Shown piece by piece: positions 1,260 through 56,202 of a stretch of DNA of 64,000 nt. The stretch covers positions 514,293 through 578,292 of the IMG/VR virus record IMGVR_UViG_3300046660_000488, one strand, 5' to 3'. The position numbers and the translations under genes were made by a program. The notes beneath the pieces were generated by a model, which saw nothing but the letters and a program-made list of their open reading frames with translations, searched no databases and was not told where the DNA came from. Every line of letters begins with the position of its first letter. Position 1 is the first letter of the stretch.

Positions 1260-1334
1260 GGTTCATTAGCTCAGCGGTAGAGCAATCGCTTGATAAGCGA
1301 TAGGTCGCTGGTTCGAATCCAGCATGAACTACCA
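1260..1334 (+). tRNA. tRNA-Ile(GAT)
   Basis: Cloverleaf, loop TTGATAA, TTCGAAT T-loop, encoded CCA. Confidence 0.95.
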
Positions 1335-1365
1335 AACAGTCGAGAGACAACCCCGAGTACTTTGT

Positions 1366-1439
1366 TCTTCTATAGCTCAGCCCGGTAGAGCAATCGCTTG
1401 ATAAGCGATAGGCCGTAGGTTCAAATCCTACTGGAAGAA
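1366..1439 (+). tRNA. tRNA-Ile(GAT), no encoded CCA
   Basis: TCTTCTA/TGGAAGA acceptor, loop TTGATAA; acceptor stem extended by flanks. Confidence 0.85.
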
Positions 1440-1457
1440 CAAAGTACTTGGGTCCAC

Positions 1458-1532
1458 GGGCCTGTAGTTCAACGGGAGAACGTCTGCATTACAAGCAGAA
1501 TGTCGGGGGTTCAACTCCCTCCGGGCCTACCA
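1458..1532 (+). tRNA. tRNA-Val(TAC)
   Basis: Cloverleaf, loop ATTACAA, CCA. Confidence 0.9.
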
Positions 1533-1737
1533 AAATACTGCTTGACAACGGTTCAACCGAACTTTAGGCAAGCAACCGCGCTCTTCGGGAAGCTCTCTTT
1601 GCTTACCGGACGGATTCCAAAACCTACCATAGGTGCGGAGTCGTGTAAAGGGGCCGGGGTCTTTGACATCGTTGATTTGCGTAACGAATTGGTCGGGCTT
1701 TACCAGAGCCCGGCCGACTTCGGGGACGTGTGTTTGA

Positions 1738-1809
1738 TGAGGGATAGTTCAGCGGTAGAACGCCTGTCTCTGGAACAGGATGTCGTAGGTTCGATCCCTA
1801 CTCCCTCAT
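1738..1809 (+). tRNA. tRNA-Gln(CTG), no encoded CCA
   Basis: TGAGGGA/TCCCTCA acceptor, loop CTCTGGA; 16-bp flanking extension. Confidence 0.85.
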
Positions 1810-1830
1810 CAAACACACGTCCCCATAGGT

Positions 1831-1906
1831 TCGGGGGTAGTTCAGTTGGTAGAACGGCAGTTTTTGGTACTGCATGTCGAAGGTTCGAGTCCTTCTCCCC
1901 GATCCA
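1831..1906 (+). tRNA. tRNA-Gln(TTG)
   Basis: Cloverleaf, loop TTTTGGT, CCA. Confidence 0.9.
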
Positions 1907-1928
1907 AACACTCAGTATTCATCCTTGT

Positions 1929-2014
1929 TGGGGAATGGTGTAATGGTAACATCCCGGCCTTTGACTCCGGAGACCGAGAAGGATTTGTAGGTTCGAGCCC
2001 TACTTCCCCAGCCA
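1929..2014 (+). tRNA. tRNA-Gln(TTG) with long variable region
   Basis: TGGGGAA/TTCCCCA acceptor, loop CTTTGAC, 16-nt variable region, CCA. Confidence 0.85.
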
Positions 2015-2043
2015 GCATGAATATTGAAGACAATGTACTTTGA

Positions 2044-2120
2044 CGCGGAGTGGAGCAGTCAGGTAGCTCGTTTGGCTCATAACCAAAAGGTCGCGGGATC
2101 GAAGCCCGCCTCCGCATCCA
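2044..2120 (+). tRNA. tRNA-Met(CAT), initiator-like (C1.A72)
   Basis: CGCGGAG/CTCCGCA acceptor, loop CTCATAA, T-loop ATCGAAG, CCA. Confidence 0.9.
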
Positions 2121-2129
2121 AGTACATTG

Positions 2130-2359
2130 AGGCCGCGTAACAAGAGAGTGAAGCAGTGATGCCCCGTCATCTGTACCTGACGGGGAGGCCAGAAACAGAC
2201 CGTGCATACGCCCCACGGTCTCTAAATATGGAACACGGACCCACTGGGGCCGTGCGGGAGCCAGCACGACCCGCCGTGGTCTAAGTCCGTAAGGGGCAGA
2301 AAGCGGCACACCCGGTACTGGCGGGTAACCTATTTGGTCGAATGACCATCACCTTTTTT

Positions 2360-2360
<1 letters not shown>
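2130..2360 (+). ncRNA. Candidate structured RNA of unknown family
   Basis: Dense helices 2162-2169/2178-2185, 2197-2204/2214-2221, 2234-2238/2250-2254, 2269-2275/2320-2326; no convincing ORF. Confidence 0.4.
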
Positions 2361-2437
<77 letters not shown>

Positions 2438-2455
2438 ATTGTCCATGTGCTTCGT

Positions 2456-2532
2456 CTAGGCGTAGCGCAGTCTGGTAGCGCGCCTGCTTTGGGAGCAGGA
2501 TGTCGCAGGTTCGAATCCTGCCGCCTAGACCA
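2456..2532 (+). tRNA. tRNA-Pro(TGG)
   Basis: Cloverleaf, loop TTTGGGA, CCA. Confidence 0.95.
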
Positions 2533-2555
2533 AGCACATGGACTTTCACCTACGG

Positions 2556-2638
2556 CAGTCGGTGAGGATGTAACAGGTTCGATCCCTGACCACAGGCTCT
2601 TGCGAGCGTGTGAGTAAGCCCATCCAAACCGACTACTG
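2556..2638 (+). ncRNA. Candidate Y-RNA-like (permuted tRNA-like) RNA
   Basis: Terminal stem AGTCGGT/ACCGACT + GGATG/CATCC enclosing a T-arm CAGG-TTCGATC-CCTG and a further hairpin; no anticodon arm or CCA. Confidence 0.4.
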
Positions 2639-2639
2639 A

Positions 2640-2727
2640 TCCTCACGACCCAGCTTGGTGACGGGCGCCGACTGTTAATCGGATGACATGGAAATGTGGC
2701 AAGGTTCGAAACCTTGGTGAGGAACCA
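2640..2727 (+). tRNA. tRNA-Asn(GTT) with long variable arm
   Basis: TCCTCAC/GTGAGGA acceptor, loop CTGTTAA, variable hairpin ACAT-GGAA-ATGT, CCA. Confidence 0.85.
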
Positions 2728-2797
2728 TTTCGCAGTTGACTTGCATTTAAGTGCTTGTCATAAATAAGGAACACGAAGGTGCTTCGGCACACTTTGT

Positions 2798-2873
2798 TCT
2801 CTCGTAGCTCAGTTGGTAGAGCGTCTGACTGTTAATCAGAATGTCGTAGGTTCGAGTCCTACCGGGGGAGCCA
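2798..2873 (+). tRNA. tRNA-Asn(GTT)
   Basis: Canonical cloverleaf, G73, CCA. Confidence 0.95.
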
Positions 2874-3011
2874 TTTCTACTACGGTGAGCAAGTAACCGC
2901 CTAACGTCCTTTGGACGAAGGTGCTCCAGCACAAGACGCTGGGCTGACAAAGCACTTGCACAATTCTCTTATCCTGCTTTTCGGTGTTTCGCCAATTTTC
3001 GGGATAACGAT

Positions 3012-3087
<76 letters not shown>

Positions 3088-3151
3088 ATTTTCTAATCTC
3101 GCGCAGGGCGCCGTGATGAACGGATAAGTCCGCTGCACGCCTTTCTTGGAT

Positions 3152-3257
3152 GGGCTGGACGCCTCCTGACATCGACGTCAGGGTAGAGGTACGGAACCTC
3201 GGGCTACGGCGACAGGGTTCGCGACCCTACGCGGTTCGATCCCGCGCCGGTCCACCA
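3152..3257 (+). ncRNA. tRNA-like RNA with alanine acceptor identity and no canonical D/anticodon arms
   Basis: GGGCTGG/CCGGTCC acceptor (G3.U70), A73, CCA, T-arm CGCGG-TTCGATC-CCGCG; 106 nt. Confidence 0.7.
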
Positions 3258-3266
3258 AGCAGTTTT

Positions 3267-3342
3267 GGGGCATTAGCTCATCTGGTAGAGCGCGACAATC
3301 GCAATGTCGAGGTGAGCGGTTCAAGTCCGCTATGCTCCACCA
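3267..3342 (+). tRNA. tRNA-Ala(CGC)
   Basis: Cloverleaf, loop ATCGCAA, G3.U70, CCA. Confidence 0.95.
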
Positions 3343-3343
3343 A

Positions 3344-3646
3344 TCACCGGCCGTTCAGGAATTTCTCCGAGCAGATGTAATCGCAGACGGAGAACACCAC
3401 GGCTTCCGCACCAGACTCGAAGGCGTCGCTGCTGTGATCGCCGGACCACTGGGGCTTCGCGAAACTGCACGACACGCCGTCCTCGTGGACGCCGACGTCG
3501 ATGATGTGGCCTTCGCCTTCGAACTTGGTCAGCGTCTCTTTCGCCCACACCACCGCTTCATAGAGGTCTTCGGTGATCTCGGATGGGACATTCGCATACA
3601 TGGCGAAAATCTGGTCCTTGAGCGCTTGGGGATAGTGGGCGGTCAT
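3344..3646 (-). CDS. Hypothetical protein, antisense within tRNA array
   Basis: 100-aa ORF filling the gap between tRNAs, coding-like composition. Confidence 0.7.
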   Translation of the reverse strand: MTAHYPQALKDQIFAMYANVPSEITEDLYEAVVWAKETLTKFEGEGHIIDVGVHEDGVSCSFAKPQWSGDHSSDAFESGAEAVVFSVCDYICSEKFLNGR

Positions 3647-3709
3647 GACGATCTCGGGTTTGGTTTACCAAATCCTACACACAACACCCGGCGGGTTCAA
3701 CCCCGCTAC

Positions 3710-3785
3710 GGGGCATTAGCTCATCTGGTAGAGCGCCTGTTTTGCAAGCAGGAGGTGTGGGGTTCGAGTCCCCAATGCTCCACCA
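3710..3785 (+). tRNA. tRNA-Ala(TGC)
   Basis: Cloverleaf, loop TTTGCAA, CCA. Confidence 0.95.
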
Positions 3786-3791
3786 AACAAT

Positions 3792-3866
3792 GCGTCTGTA
3801 GCTCAGTGGGAGAGCGCTTCCGTGACATGGAAGAGGCCGACAGTTCAATCCTGTCCAGATGCACCA
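3792..3866 (+). tRNA. tRNA-Val(GAC)
   Basis: Cloverleaf, loop GTGACAT, CCA. Confidence 0.95.
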
Positions 3867-3940
3867 TTTCACTACCCAACCCCGGAGGATAACCAAATGA
3901 CCCCGCTAAACGCAGGAAAGTAAGCAAGAAATTCCGAAAG

Positions 3941-4219
3941 ATGATCGACGTGTACGGGATATTCACCCGAGACATTGAAGAGCATCTTGACTTCAGTGAC
4001 GACATGCTCTTGGAAATGTACCAAGCAGAGTCAGTCGGTGGAGACTGTCATCATCGGAATGGCTTCTACCATGGAAAGAAATTCATGGATGTGAGCGTCA
4101 AGATGTGGCGCGAGGACATGTCGAAAGGCACGTTGTTCCTCTGCGAACTCTACGACGATCCTCTCCTGCCCAACTGGTGGTTGGACAAAATCTTCGGTCG
4201 GTCTGGTCCTCCAGACTGA
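3941..4219 (+). CDS. Hypothetical protein (true start may be the out-of-frame ATG at 3897)
   Basis: 92-aa ORF; frame is open from 3893; strong SD GGAGG precedes ATG 3897. Confidence 0.7.
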   Translation: MIDVYGIFTRDIEEHLDFSDDMLLEMYQAESVGGDCHHRNGFYHGKKFMDVSVKMWREDMSKGTLFLCELYDDPLLPNWWLDKIFGRSGPPD

Positions 4220-4226
4220 CCAACAT

Positions 4227-4303
4227 GTAGCCGTAGCTCAGTCTGGTAGAGCGCCTGCCTGAAAAGCAGGGCGTCGGTGGTTCAAATCCACCCGGTTGCA
4301 CCA
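4227..4303 (+). tRNA. tRNA-Phe(GAA)
   Basis: Cloverleaf, loop CTGAAAA, CCA. Confidence 0.95.
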
Positions 4304-4304
4304 T

Positions 4305-4871
4305 TTACTCCTTCTGGAGTTTCTTTTCTCGCCAGAGGCGGCTGTTGGGGCCATCGCCATTCCACCCGTCAAACAGCCCTTCATCCTGTGCGGCTCGCAT
4401 CATCGGAGCAACACGAATCCACGCTTGGTACGGCATAGTTCCTCGGGTGTGGTTGCATCGAACACACGAGGTGTTGACGTTGTTCTGCAAGTGGCCAAGG
4501 CTATTGTCGATCCGGTCCAGCGTAATGCGGACCTCTGGTGGTTCAACACCGCAATAAAAGCACGGCTTGGCCACGCATTCGGCCACGAATTCGAGCGTGA
4601 GGTCGCAGTCGCGGTTCTTTCGCTTGTCGGTATAGCGGCAGTCTTGCAGCACGTTGCGGGCTACGGTCATGTGATCGTTCTCTCTCCGAGCTTTGCGACG
4701 AACCGCATGGCGACGCTCTTCGGCTTGTTGGAACCCTTCCGGGTTGCTGATGAACTGTTCGCGGCGGCAGGGGCCGCATTTCTTTCGGCGCCGACCGGCG
4801 CTCATGTGGAACGCGCTCTCGGGGCGATCCTCTCCGCAATATTTGCACAACATAGTGCCATTAAGGCACAT
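4305..4871 (-). CDS. HNH (His-Me finger) homing endonuclease-like protein
   Basis: CKYC/CGPC zinc motifs and CFYCG...LDRIDNSLGHLQNNVNTSCVRCN HNH signature. Confidence 0.85.
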   Translation of the reverse strand: MCLNGTMLCKYCGEDRPESAFHMSAGRRRKKCGPCRREQFISNPEGFQQAEERRHAVRRKARRENDHMTVARNVLQDCRYTDKRKNRDCDLTLEFVAECVAKPCFYCGVEPPEVRITLDRIDNSLGHLQNNVNTSCVRCNHTRGTMPYQAWIRVAPMMRAAQDEGLFDGWNGDGPNSRLWREKKLQKE

Positions 4872-4907
4872 CTGGTTTTCCAAATTCAATATTTGGTTAA
4901 CCACTTT

Positions 4908-4984
4908 CAGGGCGTAGCGCAGCATGGTAGCGCACTTGGTCGGGAACCAAGGGGTCGCAGGTTCAAATCCTGCCGTTCTGACCA
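4908..4984 (+). tRNA. tRNA-Pro (loop TCGGGAA; GGG in canonical register)
   Basis: C1-G72, A73, CCA; non-canonical C33/A37. Confidence 0.85.
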
Positions 4985-5003
4985 TTTCGCCTACGGGCAT
5001 TAT

Positions 5004-5080
5004 CTATGTGTAGCTCAGTCTGGTAGAGCGCTGCTTTCGGGAAGCAGAGGCCGCAGGTTCAAATCCTGCCACGTAGACCA
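5004..5080 (+). tRNA. tRNA-Pro(CGG)
   Basis: Cloverleaf, loop TTCGGGA, CCA. Confidence 0.95.
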
Positions 5081-5103
5081 AAACACCGGCCACGAGCCAT
5101 CAT

Positions 5104-5180
5104 CTGAGTGTAACGCAGTCTGGTAGCGTGCCTGTTTCGGTAACAGGAGGTCGCGGGTTCAAATCCTGCCACTCAGACCA
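5104..5180 (+). tRNA. tRNA-Pro(CGG), U37 variant
   Basis: Cloverleaf, loop TTCGGTA, CCA. Confidence 0.9.
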
Positions 5181-5299
5181 ATTTCCTCGAACGAGGATAC
5201 GACTTTGGGAAGCTGACCGTTCCAGTGAGTTCGGCAGGGATGACCACCCGGCAGCTAGGCCTCGTCAGCCCGGCATGTCAGGCTAACCCAATTGACCAC

Positions 5300-5376
5300 G
5301 GTGCTGTAGCTCAGTCTGGTAGAGCAGCGGGCTCATAACTCGCTTGTCGCAGGTTCAAATCCTGCCAGCACCACCA
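5300..5376 (+). tRNA. tRNA(CAT): elongator Met or Ile2
   Basis: Cloverleaf, G1-C72, loop CTCATAA, CCA; Met versus lysidine-Ile cannot be resolved by eye. Confidence 0.9.
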
Positions 5377-5382
5377 ACCTTC

Positions 5383-5457
5383 GGGTGATTAGCTCAGTGG
5401 TAGAGCGCTGCTTTCACACGGCAGAGGTCACTGGTTCAAGCCCAGTATCACCCACCA
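5383..5457 (+). tRNA. tRNA-Val(CAC)
   Basis: Cloverleaf, loop TTCACAC, CCA. Confidence 0.95.
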
Positions 5458-5485
5458 AGAAAAAGGGGCCGAAGCCCCCTGATCC
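5458..5485 (-). terminator. Terminator-like hairpin for the minus-strand gene
   Basis: AAAAAGGGG-CCGAAG-CCCC immediately beyond the stop at 5486. Confidence 0.5.
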
Positions 5486-5728
5486 TTACTCTTCGACGTA
5501 CTGGATTTCTCGCCAAAAATCTCCGGTCGGCGTCACGGTAAAACCACCGGTGTTGGAGACGATCCTGACGTAATGTTCTGCCAGTTCGAGCACGGCCGTT
5601 TCGAGATAGCGGCCGTCGTCTTCGGTGGTGGACGTCAGAACGACCGTGCCGGTCGTGTTGAGCGGATCGAGCGCACCGGCGCGAACGGTGTCGAGCAACG
5701 CTTCGAAGTATACGTCGTAAGTAGCCAT
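5486..5728 (-). CDS. Hypothetical protein
   Basis: MATYDVYF start with SD AAGGA upstream. Confidence 0.7.
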   Translation of the reverse strand: MATYDVYFEALLDTVRAGALDPLNTTGTVVLTSTTEDDGRYLETAVLELAEHYVRIVSNTGGFTVTPTGDFWREIQYVEE

Positions 5729-5803
5729 GAAATGTGTCCTTGAAATGGGTTTAGTATCCAGCCACAAGGATAGCACTGGCCGCTTATTATAAGCAAAATA
5801 TAC

Positions 5804-5879
5804 GCCGCCTTAGCTCAGTTGGTAGAGCGCGTCCTTGGTAAGGACGAGGCCACGGGTTCAAGTCCCGTAGGTGGCTCCA
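5804..5879 (+). tRNA. tRNA-Thr(GGT)
   Basis: Cloverleaf, loop TTGGTAA, CCA. Confidence 0.95.
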
Positions 5880-5893
5880 TTTTCCCTCCTGAT

Positions 5894-5968
5894 GCCGGGG
5901 TAGCTCAGGGGTAGAGCAGCGGGCTGAAAATCCGCGTGTCGGAGGTTCGAATCCTCTCCCCGGCACCA
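5894..5968 (+). tRNA. tRNA-Phe(GAA)
   Basis: Cloverleaf, loop CTGAAAA, CCA. Confidence 0.95.
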
Positions 5969-5969
5969 T

Positions 5970-6044
5970 GGTCGCGTAGCTCAGCGGGAGAGCGTCCCCT
6001 TGACGTGGGGAAGGTCGCAGGTTCAATCCCTGCCGCGACTACCA
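5970..6044 (+). tRNA. tRNA-Val(GAC)
   Basis: Cloverleaf, loop TTGACGT, CCA. Confidence 0.95.
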
Positions 6045-7171: not shown

Positions 7172-7204
7172 CCGTGGATGGTTCTGTGCCACCTAAATAG
7201 TTCC

Positions 7205-17898: not shown

Positions 17899-18092
17899 CA
17901 CTAGAAGAGGCGAAGCAAGCATTGGTGGTGGCATCATCAAAGCGGGACTTGGCCTTTGAAATGTGGCCGAGCAATCCAACGACCATCGCGGTAGCTGGAC
18001 ACTTTGACGACCATACCTATGCCAGAGAATGGCAAAAGTACAACGACCTGATTGAAACAATACTTAACCAATTTCCGGAGTTGAAATCATGA
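17895..18092 (+). CDS. Hypothetical protein
   Basis: Coupled 65-aa ORF. Confidence 0.6.
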   Translation: MTLEEAKQALVVASSKRDLAFEMWPSNPTTIAVAGHFDDHTYAREWQKYNDLIETILNQFPELKS

Positions 18093-18667
18093 CCACCAAG
18101 ACTGAACTTGACAACCTGCTGGCCGAGACCCTGAAGGCCAACAACCGTGGCTCCACCAAGGAAGCCATCCGCATCCTGCTGAACTCGCTGGTCCCCGCGC
18201 TGGTGGACTTCGTCGAGAACCCCGGCGTTTCGTTCGTCCCGGCCGAAGTGACCAAGGAAGAAGCCGTCGCTCAGGCTGAAGCCCTGTTCTCGCCGCCGTC
18301 CAAGGCTGACGAGATCGCGGAAGACGCCATGATCATCGAGCGCATCCAAGACTCTCCGGAGCGCAAGGTGTTCTCCGTGGACGTCGGCTCGCTGGCGCCC
18401 GAAGAGGTCGTCGCCAAGCTGGAGGAATTCAAGGAAGAATTCGCCGCCGCCAAGGTGGAAGGTGAGACCTGCGAGCCGTGCGAACCGACCGAAGAGAACC
18501 CGAACGGCGTCGCCGATCCGGTCGTGATCCCGGCCGAAGACGTGCCCGCCACTGAAGTGGCCGACGAGCCTGCCGCTGAAGTCGCCGACAAGGCGGATGA
18601 TGCTGGTGAGGACGCCCCGGCTGCGAAAACCGCGCCGAAGGGCAAGACGACCAAGAAGGCTGATTAA
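18089..18667 (+). CDS. Acidic, low-complexity hypothetical protein
   Basis: E/A/P-rich C-terminus, strongly biased codons. Confidence 0.8.
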   Translation: MTTKTELDNLLAETLKANNRGSTKEAIRILLNSLVPALVDFVENPGVSFVPAEVTKEEAVAQAEALFSPPSKADEIAEDAMIIERIQDSPERKVFSVDVGSLAPEEVVAKLEEFKEEFAAAKVEGETCEPCEPTEENPNGVADPVVIPAEDVPATEVADEPAAEVADKADDAGEDAPAAKTAPKGKTTKKAD

Positions 18668-25295: not shown

Positions 25296-25823
25296 ATGAA
25301 GTTTCTCGCCCCTCTGGCCGCCATTGCGGCCCTCGCTATCGCCGGTTCGGCCGCCGCTGCTCCCTCGAACTACGTCCAAGGTTCGGTCGGTGGTCAATTC
25401 CAAGCCAACCGCGCTGACGCCACTTCCTACTCGGCCGCTGTCGGCCGCGACTTCGGCACGGTCCGCGTCGAAGGCGAATACGTCGCCTCGCGTGGTTCGG
25501 ACAATGCCAAGCTCGGCACGGTCGAAGCCAATCTGGGCAACGTCAACGTGTTCGTCGAGCCGGTGACGGTCTACGGCATCACTCCCTTCGTCGGCGCGGG
25601 CGTCGGCTACGGCTCGCTGTACGGCGCCGGTGTCAAGGGTGATCGCAACGGCACGGTGTTCAACGCCCAAGTCGGCGCCACCTACAAGCTGACCCCGAAG
25701 CTGGACGTGGTGGGCTCGTACCGCTACTGGCTGGCCGCCGACGTGGACGTCCAAAAGGCGCCCAAGATCGTCGAGCAGTATCGCGCCGAGACCCTGTCGG
25801 TGGGCCTGCGCTACAGCTTCTAA
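25296..25823 (+). CDS. Outer-membrane beta-barrel protein (OmpA-TM/Ail-Lom-like)
   Basis: Sec signal peptide, amphipathic strands, TPFVGAGVG, C-terminal LRYSF BAM motif. Confidence 0.85.
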   Translation: MKFLAPLAAIAALAIAGSAAAAPSNYVQGSVGGQFQANRADATSYSAAVGRDFGTVRVEGEYVASRGSDNAKLGTVEANLGNVNVFVEPVTVYGITPFVGAGVGYGSLYGAGVKGDRNGTVFNAQVGATYKLTPKLDVVGSYRYWLAADVDVQKAPKIVEQYRAETLSVGLRYSF

Positions 25824-25848
25824 TCCTTCGGGATATGAGGTACGGATG

Positions 25849-25879
25849 AGGCCGGGAGAAATCCCGGCCTTTTTCTTTT
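25849..25879 (+). terminator. Intrinsic terminator
   Basis: AGGCCGGGA-GAAA-TCCCGGCCT + T tract. Confidence 0.85.
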
Positions 25880-25890
25880 GGGGAACGAGA

Positions 25891-26430
25891 ATGACCATCG
25901 CCTTGATCGCAGCCATGGACCTCAACGGCGTCATCGGCAAGGACGGAACCCTACCGTGGAAGCTGCGGGACGACATGGTCCTGTTCAAGATGCAGACCTA
26001 CGGCCACAACGTCTACATGGGCCGCAAGACTTGGGAGTCCATCGGCGCCAAACCCCTGCCCGGCCGCGACAACATCGTGTTCTCCAACCAGTTGGCGGCG
26101 AAGGCCGGGGAAAACTCCTGCGAAATTCTCCAATTTGGAAATGAGTTTGTGGACGTTTACCGCGTTCACCAGATCGACAACGTTCTGAGCGACATCGGCG
26201 CTAATTACCACAGCAAGAAGCAGTTCGTCATCGGCGGGGCGAAGCTCTACGAAGCCACGCTACCTGATGCTGACGAACTGTACATCACCCGCGTGCTGGC
26301 CGAAGTCGAGGGCGACACGGTTTTCCCCGACATCGACCTCCACGAATGGAAGTTGATCACCCGCCTCGATTTCCCTAAGAACGACCGAAACGACCACGCT
26401 TTCTTCCACGCTTACTACGTTCGCAAGTAG
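25891..26430 (+). CDS. folA: Dihydrofolate reductase
   Basis: IAAMD.NGVIG..GTLPW, MGRKTWESIG.KPLPGR, IGGAKLY, GDT.FP. Confidence 0.95.
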   Translation: MTIALIAAMDLNGVIGKDGTLPWKLRDDMVLFKMQTYGHNVYMGRKTWESIGAKPLPGRDNIVFSNQLAAKAGENSCEILQFGNEFVDVYRVHQIDNVLSDIGANYHSKKQFVIGGAKLYEATLPDADELYITRVLAEVEGDTVFPDIDLHEWKLITRLDFPKNDRNDHAFFHAYYVRK

Positions 26431-29452: not shown

Positions 29453-29523
29453 ACGAAATATATCGACCGAAATCCAACGCCGTCGTATCCTGACCAAATA
29501 GGGCGTTGTGAGTATTTTTGGTC

Positions 29524-29922
29524 ATGGTCAAGCTGTTCATTGACGACGAGCGCTTCCCGCCGGGGGACGGCGAGGGATGGATCGTCGTGCGGACAATGGA
29601 AGAGGGTCAGGCGTACATCGCCCAGCACGGTTGCCCGACCTTCATCAGCTTCGACCATGACCTTGGGTACGACGGCCTCGCCCTTCTCCCGACCGGCTAC
29701 GACTTCGCCAAATGGCTGGTAGATCAGGATATGGACGCCAAGGGCCATTTCTTCCCAGACGGTTTCTGGTACTACGTCCACAGCCAGAACCCGGTCGGCG
29801 CTCGCAACATCGACGAGTTGATGTCGAGCTATTTGCTTGTGCACCGTGAAATGCCGGAGGGGATTACTATCGGATGGACGGCTGAGCCGACCACAGCGGG
29901 CTTCAGCATCCGCTATCGGTAG
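29524..29922 (+). CDS. Cyclic-phosphate-processing receiver domain protein
   Basis: LFIDDER.P, ISFDHDLG, TGYD, VHSQNPVG motifs. Confidence 0.85.
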   Translation: MVKLFIDDERFPPGDGEGWIVVRTMEEGQAYIAQHGCPTFISFDHDLGYDGLALLPTGYDFAKWLVDQDMDAKGHFFPDGFWYYVHSQNPVGARNIDELMSSYLLVHREMPEGITIGWTAEPTTAGFSIRYR

Positions 29923-29988: not shown

Positions 29989-30636
29989 ATGTCCAAGGGC
30001 GAGATCATTCTGATCAAGGGTCGCGTGATCGACCAAGACGGCAAGCTGGCCGACATCGGCCGCTACGTCGCGCCCGTGAGCATGAAGGCCGATTTCGACG
30101 ACGAGGGCTATCCCTGCCTGTCGTTCCAGATGATCCATCGCATCCCCAGCCAGATGCTGGACGCCCTGCGCGACATCGTCATGACCAACGCCAACGGCGG
30201 CTTCTCCTACGAGTTCACCGCGCTGAAGATCGTCGGTGGCCAGATGGTCGCCCAATTCTCGCGCGGCTGCGGCCAAGTCGGTGAACGGAAGACCGTTCGC
30301 GAAGGCCTGTCGTTCTGGATGATCGACCGGCCGCACGTCATCCTCCCCTCGACCGTCCTCGAAGGCGATCCGCGCACCGGACCGTGGGAGCTTCCGGAAT
30401 ACATGACCGCATGGCTGGAGACCAACTGCGGCTTCGAGGCCGTCAGCGAAGAGCGCGTGAACGAGGCGCGTGGCTGGAATTGGGCCATCGCCGAGATCAA
30501 GCCCAAGGTCGTCAAGACGCTTTCCGACCGGTTCGTCGCCAGCATCGTCTTCCATGAGCCCGAGACGGCTCACGCTTTCGTCGCTAAATTTGGCCTGAAG
30601 ACGCTGAACATCGACGTTCTGCGTCAGGGAGGATAA
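29989..30636 (+). CDS. Hypothetical protein
   Basis: SD GGAGG; 215 aa. Confidence 0.8.
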   Translation: MSKGEIILIKGRVIDQDGKLADIGRYVAPVSMKADFDDEGYPCLSFQMIHRIPSQMLDALRDIVMTNANGGFSYEFTALKIVGGQMVAQFSRGCGQVGERKTVREGLSFWMIDRPHVILPSTVLEGDPRTGPWELPEYMTAWLETNCGFEAVSEERVNEARGWNWAIAEIKPKVVKTLSDRFVASIVFHEPETAHAFVAKFGLKTLNIDVLRQGG

Positions 30637-30640
30637 GACC

Positions 30641-30853
30641 GTGTACGACGTCACTTCCGGCATCGCCGAAGCCGGGCGCCTCGACCCGATCCGTTCGAGC
30701 CTGCAAACGGCACGCCAATTCCAGCGAGACGCTGACACCCGTCTTGCCAGTTTCAGGGAAGGCACGTCGCACCACGACAGCGCCGTCGAGGACAAGAAAC
30801 GCGCGGATGCCATGTTGGACGCCGCCCTCGCCCAGCTTGAAAGCCTGCGCTGA
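30641..30853 (+). CDS. Hypothetical protein
   Basis: SD GGAGGA, GTG start. Confidence 0.65.
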   Translation: MYDVTSGIAEAGRLDPIRSSLQTARQFQRDADTRLASFREGTSHHDSAVEDKKRADAMLDAALAQLESLR

Positions 30854-31296
30854 TGGCTGTCCCCAAATTCATCTACGTCGTCAGCGGACAGCAGCATTGG
30901 ATGTTCGCGCTCAGCAACTGGCGCCTGATCGTCGAGCGCGCCGTCATGACCGGCCAACCTGCCGAGATCAAGGACAAGTGGAAGCTCAAGCACCCGGTAA
31001 AGCCGGGCTGGGGCCGCACGATCATCAACATCACCGCTTGGACGTCGGACGACTACGTCAAGGTGCTGAACGACATGAACAAAGGATACAAGATCGACCC
31101 AGATCACCTGTTCCGCGTCCGCAGCGTCTATGACGGCGCCATCCTGAAGACCGGACGTTCGAGGGAAATCCTCGAAGGCTATCGCGACGATTCCTCACCG
31201 GCTGGCTACGGCAAGATTGTCGTCGAGCCGATCCCCGGCCGGGAGGCGGATTGCCCCAAGCCGATCTTCCTCAAGAACGAGCCGATCTTCGACTGA
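30853..31296 (+). CDS. Hypothetical protein
   Basis: Coupled ORF. Confidence 0.75.
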   Translation: MAVPKFIYVVSGQQHWMFALSNWRLIVERAVMTGQPAEIKDKWKLKHPVKPGWGRTIINITAWTSDDYVKVLNDMNKGYKIDPDHLFRVRSVYDGAILKTGRSREILEGYRDDSSPAGYGKIVVEPIPGREADCPKPIFLKNEPIFD

Positions 31297-31364
31297 ATTC
31301 AATCTGGTTGACCAAACTGTCCTTTCTCTGGTAAATAGAGTTTCCTCTAACAGGAAGAAGGACA

Positions 31365-31568
31365 ATGGCGAAGCGACCCCCGCGCAACCCGCGCAACCCG
31401 CACGCCCAAGCCCTCTTCACCTGCAAGCTCTTCGCTCCGAAGTCCGTGCCGGTGAAAAAGGGAAAGGGCATGAAGTACGACCGCAAGAAGGATCGGGGAG
31501 TGGACCTCTCCGGTCCTTATTTTTTGCCTGAATACTTGGGGTTTTTGAGACCAGTGTTTTTCGCTTAA
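31365..31568 (+). CDS. arfA: Alternative ribosome-rescue factor A homolog
   Basis: N...ALF...LF.......KKGKG.KY.RK aligns with ArfA [30 protein letters not shown] AAGGA. Confidence 0.8.
   Translation: MAKRPPRNPRNPHAQALFTCKLFAPKSVPVKKGKGMKYDRKKDRGVDLSGPYFLPEYLGFLRPVFFA
31488..31525 (+). terminator. Intrinsic terminator inside arfA CDS (non-stop mRNA)
   Basis: 13-bp stem AAGGATCGGGGAG/CTCTCCGGTCCTT, loop TGGAC, then ATTTTTT; stop codon about 40 nt further on. Confidence 0.8.
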
Positions 31569-31628: not shown

Positions 31629-31922
31629 GTGTCGCAAGTCACCAAGATTCGTCAAGTCCTCCGAGCGCGTATCGCGGCGGCGCTGGCCGACCGCGCGGGC
31701 ATTTGCGACGAACGGCTCGATGAAATCGAGTCCATCGCCTACAACTCGGTCCAGTCTCTGAAGCCGAACGTGCTCCGCAATCTGATGCAGCACCACATGC
31801 GGAAGATGGAAGACGGCCACATCCTCATCGAAATCCCGTTCATCATCGCCGCCGAGTTGGCCTTGGAAATTATCCAAGCACGCGCGGACGACTACCACAA
31901 CTATGACCAAATCTGTGCTTGA
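31629..31922 (+). CDS. Hypothetical protein
   Basis: SD GGGAG, GTG start. Confidence 0.7.
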   Translation: MSQVTKIRQVLRARIAAALADRAGICDERLDEIESIAYNSVQSLKPNVLRNLMQHHMRKMEDGHILIEIPFIIAAELALEIIQARADDYHNYDQICA

Positions 31923-34210: not shown

Positions 34211-34221
34211 TAAATATCGCC

Positions 34222-36373: not shown

Positions 36374-37076
36374 GTGGATCAACCTGTTCGAGGCCGCGCC
36401 CACCGCAGGCACGATTTACTACCACGGCACGCCGTTGGAAGCAGCGGCCAAGGCCATCATGAAGACCGGCCTGAAGGGTGCGGAGGTGCAAGGTCGTGGA
36501 ATGATGGCGCCGGTGGCCGGGCGCGTCTACATGACGCCCAGCCTCGCCTACGCCATCATCTATGCGATTGGTGGCGCGTACGCGGGGCACGAAGCTCCGG
36601 AAAGCATGATCGCGAAATCTCGCTACGGCTATGTGTTCGTCATCGACGGCAACGATCTGGACACGGTTGAGCCCGATGAAGATTCCATCGGCGAATGGCT
36701 GCACAACAACGGTAAGCGAAGCGACGGCGGCAGTTCGTCGTTCGGAAACCGGCGTTTGGGCTCGATCCAATATGAGCCGAAATTCAAGCACGGCGATCCA
36801 CTCTTCCGGCTATGGCACAACGTCAAGAACGCCATGACGCCGCGTCAGTTCGAGTTGACCATGCAGGCGGAGTACGCGGCTTGGGCACACGGCGGAAAGC
36901 GCGCCTTGAAGGTTCTGAGCGATAACGACAAGGCCCTGCTCGTCGCGCAGGGAACCCACGTCCACCACGCCAGCGGCATCATGCCCTCGCAGTGCTGGAA
37001 GCTCGACAAAAAGCGCACTCAGGATTTGGCTGCGGACGGTTCCAATTTCTTCGAGATCGCCACACGGGTCTCATAA
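36366..37076 (+). CDS. Putative ADP-ribosyltransferase fold (H-Y type), virion-targeted
   Basis: YYHGT, I...GLK, VYMTPSLAYAIIYA, YGYVFVI; MREWINLFE N-terminus. Confidence 0.6.
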   Translation: MREWINLFEAAPTAGTIYYHGTPLEAAAKAIMKTGLKGAEVQGRGMMAPVAGRVYMTPSLAYAIIYAIGGAYAGHEAPESMIAKSRYGYVFVIDGNDLDTVEPDEDSIGEWLHNNGKRSDGGSSSFGNRRLGSIQYEPKFKHGDPLFRLWHNVKNAMTPRQFELTMQAEYAAWAHGGKRALKVLSDNDKALLVAQGTHVHHASGIMPSQCWKLDKKRTQDLAADGSNFFEIATRVS

Positions 37077-48494: not shown

Positions 48495-48528
48495 AGCCCC
48501 GGTGGTTCTCCACCGGGGCTTTTTCTTT
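48495..48528 (+). terminator. Intrinsic terminator
   Basis: AGCCCCGGTG/CACCGGGGCT + T tract. Confidence 0.85.
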
Positions 48529-54639: not shown

Positions 54640-56166
54640 ATGATTAAGAAGACCGTGAAGGAAACGGCTCAGGCCAAGGGTCTGGCTTTCCTCATCGAAA
54701 GCGAACTGGACAAGGCTGAGGTCGTCATCGCGGCCAAGGGCATCCTGTCCAAGCTGCAAGGCATGGCCGAAGACCTCGCCAAGATCGAGGCCGACGACAT
54801 CATGCCGATCCTCGACAACATGCGTCTGACCTTCGGGCCGGAACTGACCGACAGCTTCAACGACATCACGACGGCGAAAATTCGTCAGACGATGGAAGCT
54901 GTGAAGGGCGCCAAGGAAGCCATCACCCGCGAAGTCGGCCGTCTGGAGAACACGGTCAACGGCGAGCCCACCAACGATCTGGGCATGGGCGACGAAGGCA
55001 TGGGTATGGATGGCGACATGGCTGACGGTAGCTTCGATGCTCCGGAAGACAATGATCTCGACGTTCCGCCGATGCCTGACGCGGCTGACCCGGACGCGGT
55101 TCCGACCGCTGATCTCGCCGCTGGCGGCGAAGAAGGCCCCGACGCCGGTGGTCTGGCCGACGAACTGGACGCTGCTTTCGACAAGGAAGCGACCGCCGGT
55201 GGTGCTGCTGGCCGCGCCCGCAAGGAAAGCGCCATGGTCTCGCGCAACGTCAAGGCTCTTCGCGAATCGAAGAACCCGGACATGCTGATCTACGCTGCGT
55301 TCAAGCGCACGATGAAGGAAAGCCGCAAGATCGTCGAGTCCGCTCGCGCTGTGGCCAAGGCATTCGCCATCGACTTCGATGACGTCGCCACCATCGTGAA
55401 GGAACACGCTGTCAAGGAAAGCAAGACTCGTAAGGACGAGAAGGGCCGCAAGGACAAGAACGACGACCGCTCCGAGGATCGCAAGACCAAGAAGCGCGAA
55501 CGCCCCACGGACATCGACGAAGGCAAGACCTTCAAGGACGAGGAAGGCAAGACGTCGAAGAACAAGGACCGTTCGGAAGACCGCGCCACCAAGAAGCGCG
55601 AGCGTCCGAAGGACATCGACGAAGGCAAGACCTTCAAGGACGAAGACGGCAAGACCGACAAGAACAAGGATCGCTCCGAGGATCGCAAGACCAAGAAGCG
55701 CGAACGTCCTTCGGACCTCGACGAAGCCAAGAAGTCTTTTAAGGCTGGCGGCATCGCGGGTAAGCCGAGCGATGCACCGGTCGAAGAAAGCGTCCTGAAC
55801 CGTTTTCAGCCCCGTAAGGGTCTGAGCGACTTCCGCACCCGTCGCATCGACGTGGTGTCACAGGAAGACGGTACGGCTCGCGCCGTGAAGGATTACAACG
55901 ACCACGTCAATCGCACGATGGAAGTGCCGTATATCTACGCGATGGTGGACGGCGAAGCTCGCCAGTTCAACAGCCATTCCGGCGATCCCTTCATCATCCG
56001 CGTGTCGAAGACGATGCCGGAGCTTGTGAAGCGCTGGAACGGTGAAAACCTCAGCCCGCGTTGGCAGGTGAAAGTCGAGAATGGACAGGGCGTTGTGCCG
56101 CCCGACGTCAAGTCCGGCTTCATCGACGCTCCGGGTTATCGTTTCCTGCCACAACGGCCGCGATAA
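54640..56166 (+). CDS. Prohead core/scaffold-like protein with internal repeats
   Basis: SD GGAG; LIESE..KAEVVIAAK motif, acidic linker, 34-aa repeats. Confidence 0.7.
   Translation: MIKKTVKETAQAKGLAFLIESELDKAEVVIAAKGILSKLQGMAEDLAKIEADDIMPILDNMRLTFGPELTDSFNDITTAKIRQTMEAVKGAKEAITREVGRLENTVNGEPTNDLGMGDEGMGMDGDMADGSFDAPEDNDLDVPPMPDAADPDAVPTADLAAGGEEGPDAGGLADELDAAFDKEATAGGAAGRARKESAMVSRNVKALRESKNPDMLIYAAFKRTMKESRKIVESARAVAKAFAIDFDDVATIVKEHAVKESKTRKDEKGRKDKNDDRSEDRKTKKRERPTDIDEGKTFKDEEGKTSKNKDRSEDRATKKRERPKDIDEGKTFKDEDGKTDKNKDRSEDRKTKKRERPSDLDEAKKSFKAGGIAGKPSDAPVEESVLNRFQPRKGLSDFRTRRIDVVSQEDGTARAVKDYNDHVNRTMEVPYIYAMVDGEARQFNSHSGDPFIIRVSKTMPELVKRWNGENLSPRWQVKVENGQGVVPPDVKSGFIDAPGYRFLPQRPR
55417..55725 (+). 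repeat. Three tandem 102-bp (34-aa) charged repeats
   Basis: GAAGGCAAGACC at 55519 and 55621; unit EGKTFKDE.GK..KNKDRSEDR.TKKRERP.DID. Confidence 0.9.
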
Positions 56167-56172
56167 ACAACA

Positions 56173-56202
56173 AAGGGGCCGCTCACCAGCGGCCCCTTCT
56201 TT
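56173..56202 (+). terminator. Intrinsic terminator
   Basis: AAGGGGCCGCT/AGCGGCCCCTT + CTTT. Confidence 0.75.

Follow-up and report, generated by a model that had tools for sequence, protein, structure and literature searches.

Ribosome rescue is essential in bacteria, and the non-stop switch of arfA is a classic example of how one rescue pathway keeps watch on another. An arfA-like open reading frame (ORF) in the genome of a very large phage, with a hairpin and a T tract located upstream of its own stop codon, raises the question of whether phages have kept this switch, such that the rescue factor would be made from an mRNA without a stop codon. The answer depends on the identity of the encoded protein, on whether the hairpin is a conserved element of the locus and on what happens to protein conservation on either side of it.

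The phage and the arfA-like locus

The DNA analysed here, referred to below as the window, makes up the final 64 kb of the IMG/VR phage contig IMGVR_UViG_3300046660_000488 (578,292 bp). It has a G+C content of 58%. The phage origin that the original prediction, made from the letters of the sequence, had taken for granted is borne out by the 578-kb IMG/VR record, by 24 tRNA genes and by matches of window proteins to a ribonucleotide reductase (RNR), a DnaB-type helicase, a second helicase and a virion structural protein. The contig is that of a very large phage, and its host is probably Gram-negative. The tRNA genes are arrayed on the + strand at positions 1260-6044 (24 by ARAGORN, 23 by Rfam) and include three tRNA-Met(CAT), four tRNA-Pro and five tRNA-Val genes. 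No tmRNA is found in the window, where the Rfam matches are to tRNAs only. There is no DNA-level relative of the window among GenBank phages, and the locus itself and one close relative are also without a DNA or protein match there.

Further genes of the window encode a T4-portal-like fragment, a DHFR, an SNase and an outer-membrane beta-barrel protein. The first of these is a 192-residue ORF (18089-18667) that matches the T4 portal (Gp20) model over residues 75-120 only; it could encode a portal fragment or a very divergent portal-related domain. A terminator-like hairpin (25848-25871) is located just past the outer-membrane beta-barrel gene (stop at 25823) and overlaps the opening codons of the DHFR ORF as called mechanically (25846-26430). 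Because the Pfam DHFR match starts at residue 18, the true DHFR start is probably 3' of this hairpin. A strong G+C-rich palindromic hairpin at 56172-56199, with T-rich runs on both strands, is found directly past the stop of the gene at 54640-56166 and looks like a bidirectional terminator.

The arfA-like ORF is located at 31365-31568 and has 67 codons, ending with TAA at 31566-31568; it is encoded on the + strand, as are all features of the locus described below. A purine-rich Shine-Dalgarno region, AGGAAGAAGGA, can be read from the sequence at 31352-31362, and GGAG-like runs align at this position in homologous loci. The upstream gene ends 190 nt 5' of the hairpin, and the downstream ORF (31629-31922) begins 60 nt past the TAA.

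The TAAATA box that had been reported at 31332 is located at 31332-31337, 27 nt 5' of the ATG, and is probably a -10 element. A -35-like hexamer, TTGACC (31308-31313), is separated from it by a spacer of 18 nt. Of 13 homologous loci, 11 have G(G/T)TAAATA equally far from the ATG, and nine have a TTGACA-like hexamer that aligns with TTGACC. The TTGACC/TAAATA pair was not called by a generic sigma-70 scan. The arrangement TTGAC-N17-21-TAAATA occurs three times in the window (0.04 expected), and the other two copies, with spacers of 19-20 nt, lie before the tRNA array (896-926) and within it (2736-2766). The hexamer TAAATA by itself is present 20 times on the + strand and three times on the - strand. 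Several copies are only 5-6 nt ahead of an ATG, examples being those at 7194, 34211, 35775, 37074 and 48057; the TAA of the copy at 37074 is the stop of the preceding ORF, and the copy at 34211 follows directly after a TGA. TAAATA may mark both promoters and stop-restart junctions.

A gene for a cyclic-phosphate-processing receiver domain (cRec), predicted to process 2',3'-cyclic RNA ends, is located upstream at 29518-29922 (PF20274, E-value: 4.6e-23). It is separated from the arfA-like gene by two ORFs (29989-30636 and 30853-31296) that are without homologues in the other loci. The arfA-like gene has a cRec gene beside or close to it in the window, in the homologous loci L003 (9563-9949), L005, L008, L010 (723-1031), L014 (949-1257), L016 (5659-5967) and L017, and on two further contigs. 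This linkage may be mere synteny among relatives, and it is a lead toward a functional module, not evidence of one.

Relationship of the protein to ArfA

The original prediction had likened the ORF product to ArfA on the basis of its KKGKG core. This core is present at residues 31-35 (31455-31469) and aligns with K33-G37 of E. coli ArfA. An HMM search against the ArfA family, which had been proposed as a check, gave a divided result: Pfam PF03889 (ArfA) is the sole family match of the window protein (E-value: 7e-4), but the score of 19.4 bits is below the gathering cut-off of 25.5 bits. PF03889 is also the only significant match of nine of the ten relatives that were scanned (16.5-25.7 bits), with only P0126 (25.7 bits) above the cut-off. 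The window protein has no NCBIfam match and no phmmer match in the PDB.

When a word-indexed protein search was performed with the single window protein, it recovered only itself. Exhaustive phmmer comparison with 1.84 billion representatives identified 16 small proteins (54-98 aa), which align to query residues 1 to 44-59 only. A profile search enlarged this subfamily to about 45 members, many of them on contigs of 415-578 kb. The homologues share around 50% identity, with invariant motif residues, and at least six members are annotated by JGI as 'stalled ribosome alternative rescue factor ArfA'. Two large repeat proteins in the phmmer list, P0122 and P0135, were rejected as relatives because their scores were sums of weak repeat matches; the third long protein in the list, P0136, was left out of the subfamily without inspection of its sequence. 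A locus search with a tighter alignment gave one distant genome match and three metagenome loci. Two distant relatives, L009 (158-307) and L006 (861-1007), lack a hairpin and end with a real stop in codon 49-50. L006 is found on a 2.4-kb contig that was binned into a Rhodospirillaceae MAG, and its protein is without the GKG motif.

The subfamily profile has a single match in the PDB at E-values of up to 10, which is the ArfA chain 5u4i_w (E-value: 0.31). ArfA is ordered only when it is on the ribosome. Comparison of the subfamily alignment with canonical ArfA using hhalign gave a probability of 85% (pairwise E-value: 5.8e-6, residues 13-45 against 15-46), the canonical profile being low in diversity because the search with E. 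coli ArfA, from which it was built, gave enterobacterial sequences only. The aligned pairs (phage/E. coli) are A16/A18, L22-F23/L24-F25, KKGKG/KKGKG, Y38/Y39 and R40/R41. In the subfamily alignment, F23, G33, Y38 and R40 are invariant, and A16, K31, K32 and K34 are conserved in at least 90% of sequences. The core residues of ArfA (the A18 equivalent, L-F, KKGKG and Y-x-R) are all present in the window protein, with one extra residue between GKG and Y, and each is either invariant or conserved to at least 90% in the subfamily. In E. coli ArfA, the substitution A18T blocks RF2 activation, and docking on RF2 is by the strand Q27-E30 (PMC8012679).

The KH motif, which is common to ArfA and BrfA, is absent from the window protein. 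The aligned residues are D43-R44 (RN, QD or DW in relatives), and the region aligned to the motif is still K/R-rich. The KH motif is located in the C-terminal part of ArfA and binds a pocket within the mRNA entry channel, where the basic contacts are redundant (PMC8012679). The N-terminus of the subfamily is conserved and basic (MKxRKPRKxRN), unlike that of E. coli ArfA.

Membership in the BrfA family (B. subtilis YqkK family) was considered and rejected, as only ArfA was matched in the Pfam, NCBIfam and PDB searches and the KH motif is absent. The BrfA-ribosome structure 6SZS, which is present in the PDB (PMC8012679), is not matched by the subfamily profile.

The kinship with ArfA that had been proposed is upheld by the PF03889 match, the hhalign probability of 85%, the PDB search in which ArfA is the only match and the JGI naming. 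Assignment of the window protein to a divergent ArfA subfamily is supported by these comparisons, at a score below the curated threshold for the window protein itself.

Hairpin, T tract and tail

A 13-bp hairpin and a T tract had been described within the coding sequence, and both are found there (31488-31526). The hairpin (31488-31518, codons 42-52) has a stem of 13 pairs, seven of them G-C, and a 5-nt loop. It is followed by the T tract ATTTTTTG (T6; 31519-31526, codons 53-54), which is the predicted 3' end of the transcript. Termination 7-9 nt past the stem is predicted to place the 3' end of the RNA in codons 53-54, some 40 nt short of the stop; at the sequence level, this agrees with the earlier expectation of a transcript that ends near codon 54, before the TAA. 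The 71-nt region has a folding energy of -27.6 kcal/mol (z = -3.2), with two of 200 shuffled sequences folding equally well.

Across the full 64 kb, the + strand has only four terminator-like sites with at least 10 pairs, and the site in the arfA-like ORF is the longest. The other three resemble ordinary terminators: those at 25848 and 56173 begin 25 and 7 nt, respectively, past ORF stops, and that at 48495 is about 215 nt 5' of the next long ORF.

DNA sequence was available for 13 loci (the window, L003, L004, L005, L007, L008 and L010-L016). A stem of 10-15 bp is found at codons 40-54 in all 13, followed by four to seven T in the next 9 nt. In some homologues the T tract is weak, with only four T in these 9 nt. 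None of the 13 loci has an in-frame stop before the hairpin, and the stop is located at a variable position 31-142 nt past the stem. Covariation was tested using the 13-pair structure and an alignment of 12 of the 13 loci, in which 94.7% of cells are paired; sliding the partner by one column reduces this value to 59-62%. Compensatory changes affecting both sides of the stem are found in eight of the 13 pairs, and none of 500 shuffles reaches the observed values. RNAalifold independently predicts the same helix. It is mainly because the hairpin is conserved in all 13 loci with compensatory substitutions that it can be regarded as more than a chance structure.

Frameshifting or transcriptional slippage on T6, leading to the TGA at 31529-31531, was also considered. 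It was rejected, as stops in the alternative frames around the T tract are not conserved across the 13 loci.

Protein-level constraint vanishes beyond the hairpin. The conserved coding part, corresponding to codons 1-54 (31365-31526), is the predicted product. The remaining codons, 55-67, and the TAA (31527-31568) form an unconserved hydrophobic tail that is predicted to be rarely transcribed or translated. Mean identity is 58% for the heads of the subfamily members and 18% for their tails. P0144 and P0148 have identical heads and unrelated tails, and tail length varies between 2 and 46 residues across members. The conserved protein end, SGP[YF], is simply what the codons of the stem's descending arm encode.

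Residues 53-67 of the window protein (FLPEYLGFLRPVFFA) are hydrophobic, as had been claimed. The hydrophobic fraction across members is 0.58 in the tails and 0.30 in the heads. Beyond the T tract, the in-frame value is 0.51, compared to 0.39-0.41 for the other two frames. As this excess is small (0.51 against 0.40) and the compared sequences are relatives of one another, the evidence for selection of a hydrophobic tail is only suggestive.

The original prediction had proposed that the phage keeps a stop-less design. The covariation of the stem, the lack of an in-frame stop ahead of it and the end of protein conservation at this point agree with that proposal, and they support a design that is conserved and under selection.

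Proposed ribosome rescue by phages: precedents, alternatives and model

The bacterial background to this design had been given correctly: arfA and brfA of bacteria are expressed from stop-less mRNAs (PMC8012679, PMC8327144). In E. coli, RNase III cleaves the arfA mRNA (PMC8012679, PMC8327144), and the non-stop mRNAs of N. gonorrhoeae arfA (PMC8327144) and B. subtilis brfA (PMC8012679) are ended by a terminator. The phage locus fits the terminator type better than the RNase III type because its stems are short with an immediate T tract, whereas the E. coli hairpin is approximately 20 bp. The architecture is the same as in N. gonorrhoeae, where a hairpin ends transcription before the stop and synthesis is held down by trans-translation (PMC8327144). 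The N. gonorrhoeae gene is chromosomal and encodes a canonical ArfA, whereas the phage protein is divergent, lacks KH, has the RKPRKxRN N-terminus and carries the extra residue after GKG.

E. coli ArfA (YhdL) has a 72-codon ORF with a hydrophobic, unconserved tail and a KKGKGSY core (PMC8012679), and the phage ORF is similar in having 67 codons and in keeping the core. The two differ in that BLASTP identity is only 36% over 33 residues and in that truncation of the E. coli mRNA is mainly by RNase III, at a longer hairpin (approximately 20 bp). Of the 72 residues of E. coli ArfA, the final 17-18 are missing from the active protein, and shortening to 40 residues abolishes activity (PMC8012679). 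The predicted phage product of approximately 53 aa is similar in length to the active E. coli protein. BrfA of B. subtilis is comparable in having a 72-codon ORF, a rho-independent terminator ahead of the stop, regulation by trans-translation and RF2 as its partner (PMC8012679). It nevertheless belongs to an unrelated sequence family, and its similarity to ArfA is limited to the KH motif (PMC8012679), which is absent from the phage protein.

ArfA-like genes are also found in other phages. Gp10 of Citromicrobium phage vB_CbaS-RXM, which is annotated as ArfA, matches the subfamily profile with 90% probability over 43 columns (hhalign). The gene has an 11-bp hairpin at codons 35-43, a weak T tract and a stop at codon 61, and it probably has the same non-stop design. 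RXM is a 104-kb siphophage of an alphaproteobacterium; in its description gp10 is named ArfA, and a hairpin or tmRNA control is not mentioned (PMC8953757). A gene of Pseudoalteromonas phage J2-1 is likewise annotated as ArfA, in both phages by name only. As ArfA had already been annotated in these two cultured phages, the novelty of the locus is somewhat less than the original prediction implied.

A tblastn search with E. coli ArfA identified ArfA-like ORFs in several cultured phages, several of which infect alphaproteobacteria. Five phage-borne genes (Salmonella phage Arash gp99c and genes of Pseudomonas phage pf16, J2-1, Ralstonia jumbo phage RsoM2USA and the metagenomic P0173) share the core KKGKGS[YF]RR in four of five cases, J2-1 being without GKG. 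Unlike the window gene, these five have a real stop after 40-51 codons and no hairpin before it. Judging from this layout, their output would be constitutive and tmRNA-independent. P0173 (40 residues) adjoins rIIB, and the next gene begins 3 nt past its stop. Since both hairpin-type and stop-type genes are found, phages carry two designs, one switch-bearing and one constitutive.

Some of these genes are misannotated or unannotated. Arash gp99c (L018 398-538, OQ632216.1) is annotated as 'ribosomal protein L2'; it is 63% identical to residues 4-41 of E. coli ArfA and has the motif KKGKGSYRR. The gene probably encodes an ArfA and ends with an ordinary stop; the annotated start seems too far upstream. 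ArfA-like ORFs in pf16 (L019 395-535), RsoM2USA (L022 434-553) and Caulobacter phage Cr30 (11151-11237) are unannotated in GenBank. The records of pf16 and RsoM2USA have a 'hypothetical protein' on the strand opposite the ArfA-like ORF, over the same stretch.

Huge phages are known to encode tmRNA, SmpB and release factors (PMC7162821). These are also termination and rescue genes, but they belong to a different rescue pathway. In a literature search for ArfA in huge phages, no match was found in that paper, and there are zero occurrences of ArfA in a jumbo-phage survey (PMC7824862) in which cRec, tRNAs and PTH2 are discussed as serving RNA repair and rescue. The literature search found no description of a phage non-stop switch. 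Non-stop control itself is established in bacteria, and the locus is a divergent viral member of this known kind of regulatory system.

Several other explanations of the locus have to be weighed. Short spurious ORFs are plentiful in GC-rich sequence, and the arfA-like ORF might be one of them, with the hairpin serving as the ordinary terminator of the upstream gene. The conservation data lead us to reject a chance ORF as barely credible: the ORF product has about 45 homologues that are around 50% identical and keep invariant motif residues, the promoter box and Shine-Dalgarno region are conserved, and the upstream gene ends 190 nt 5' of the hairpin. Alternatively, the hairpin may be a processing or stability element (a site for RNase III or another endonuclease, or a stem protecting the 3' end) instead of a terminator. 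RNase III truncates E. coli arfA at its hairpin (PMC8012679, PMC8327144), and some homologues have only four T in the 9 nt after the stem. This reading is unlikely, however, given that the stems of 10-15 bp are shorter than the roughly 20-bp hairpin of E. coli arfA, that a T-rich tract is found directly 3' of the stem at every locus and that hairpins with T tracts elsewhere in the window are located past ORF stops or between long ORFs. Even if the hairpin were a processing site, the mRNA would still be stop-less and the tmRNA logic would be the same.

It is also conceivable that the terminator is a leaky attenuator, with read-through producing the full-length protein of 67 residues as the main product and the terminator tuning the downstream gene (31629-31922) via ribosome proximity. 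A coupled ribosome can suppress terminators inside translated regions, this ORF begins only 60 nt past the TAA, and no separate sigma-70-like promoter was called in the gap before 31629. A functional full-length product is difficult to reconcile with tails that are 18% identical, unrelated on identical heads and 2-46 residues long; the downstream genes vary between loci and no alternative-frame stop is conserved, so that an attenuator appears quite unlikely. Still less probable is a channel-binding peptide without a role in rescue, acting for example by blocking tmRNA-SmpB tagging of phage proteins or by altering host ribosomes. Such a peptide would be compatible with the absence of the KH motif, with the strongly basic and family-specific N-terminus, with the sub-threshold Pfam scores of most members and with the use of the mRNA entry channel by both ArfA and the SmpB tail (PMC8012679). 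Against it, A16 (the equivalent of A18) and the segment aligned to Q27-E30, the beta-strand that is added to RF2 (PMC8012679), are conserved in position, and ribosome jamming without release would harm phage translation too.

The explanation favoured here, which we consider probable, is that the locus encodes a divergent phage ArfA that is made from a non-stop mRNA by means of a terminator in the ORF, is under tmRNA control and recruits RF2. The interpretation as a non-stop switch is well supported by the comparative evidence; from bacterial precedent, we infer termination at the hairpin site, control by tmRNA, recruitment of RF2 and a benefit to the phage.

The proposed mechanism begins with transcription of the arfA-like gene, which would be driven by its own TTGACC-N18-TAAATA promoter. 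RNA polymerase would halt at the intrinsic terminator in the ORF (31488-31518 and T6), such that most transcripts would end in codons 53-54 without a stop. A ribosome that translates this RNA would stall at the 3' end. If host tmRNA-SmpB has spare capacity, the nascent ArfA peptide would be tagged and degraded. If trans-translation is overloaded or out of action (for instance, through mass cleavage of mRNA or tRNA during infection or defence), the peptide of approximately 53 residues would instead be released. Its basic, K/R-rich C-terminal half would bind the empty mRNA channel of other non-stop ribosomes and recruit host RF2, which would release the stalled peptide and return the ribosomes to phage translation. 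A ribosome closely behind the polymerase could suppress termination within the coding region. Bacterial ArfA is confined to Gammaproteobacteria and some Betaproteobacteria, with none among 2,376 alphaproteobacterial genomes (PMC11633108). Given this taxonomic restriction, compatibility with host RF2 is an assumption of the model.

A broader possibility, which is doubtful at present, is that the non-stop arfA gene is the sensor arm with which a clade of phages of approximately 415-580 kb responds to translation damage, reading the saturation of host trans-translation by way of the stop-less transcript and only then releasing a viral RF2 recruiter. The saturation sensed in this way may be due to defence RNases or to mRNA decay induced by the phage. 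The arfA-like gene is linked to cRec and has the TTGAC-N18-20-TAAATA promoter type in common with the tRNA array, and the three could form one regulon for repairing or bypassing cleaved RNAs. If the sensor reading is true, the stop-codon versions would belong to phages that have lost the sensor and express the factor constitutively, and alphaproteobacteria-type hosts that lack ArfA would gain RF2-dependent rescue from such phages.

With this finding, ArfA joins the translation genes on record for huge phages, and attention is drawn to ArfA-like genes that are misannotated or lack annotation in cultured phages. Direct tests are possible in E. coli laboratory strains and in reconstituted translation. 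The switch-bearing and plain-stop phage versions constitute a natural experiment on when tmRNA-dependent control pays. A phage arfA gene would imply that phages themselves supply RF2-dependent rescue, and a switch under purifying selection in very large phages would imply that the state of host trans-translation matters during infection.
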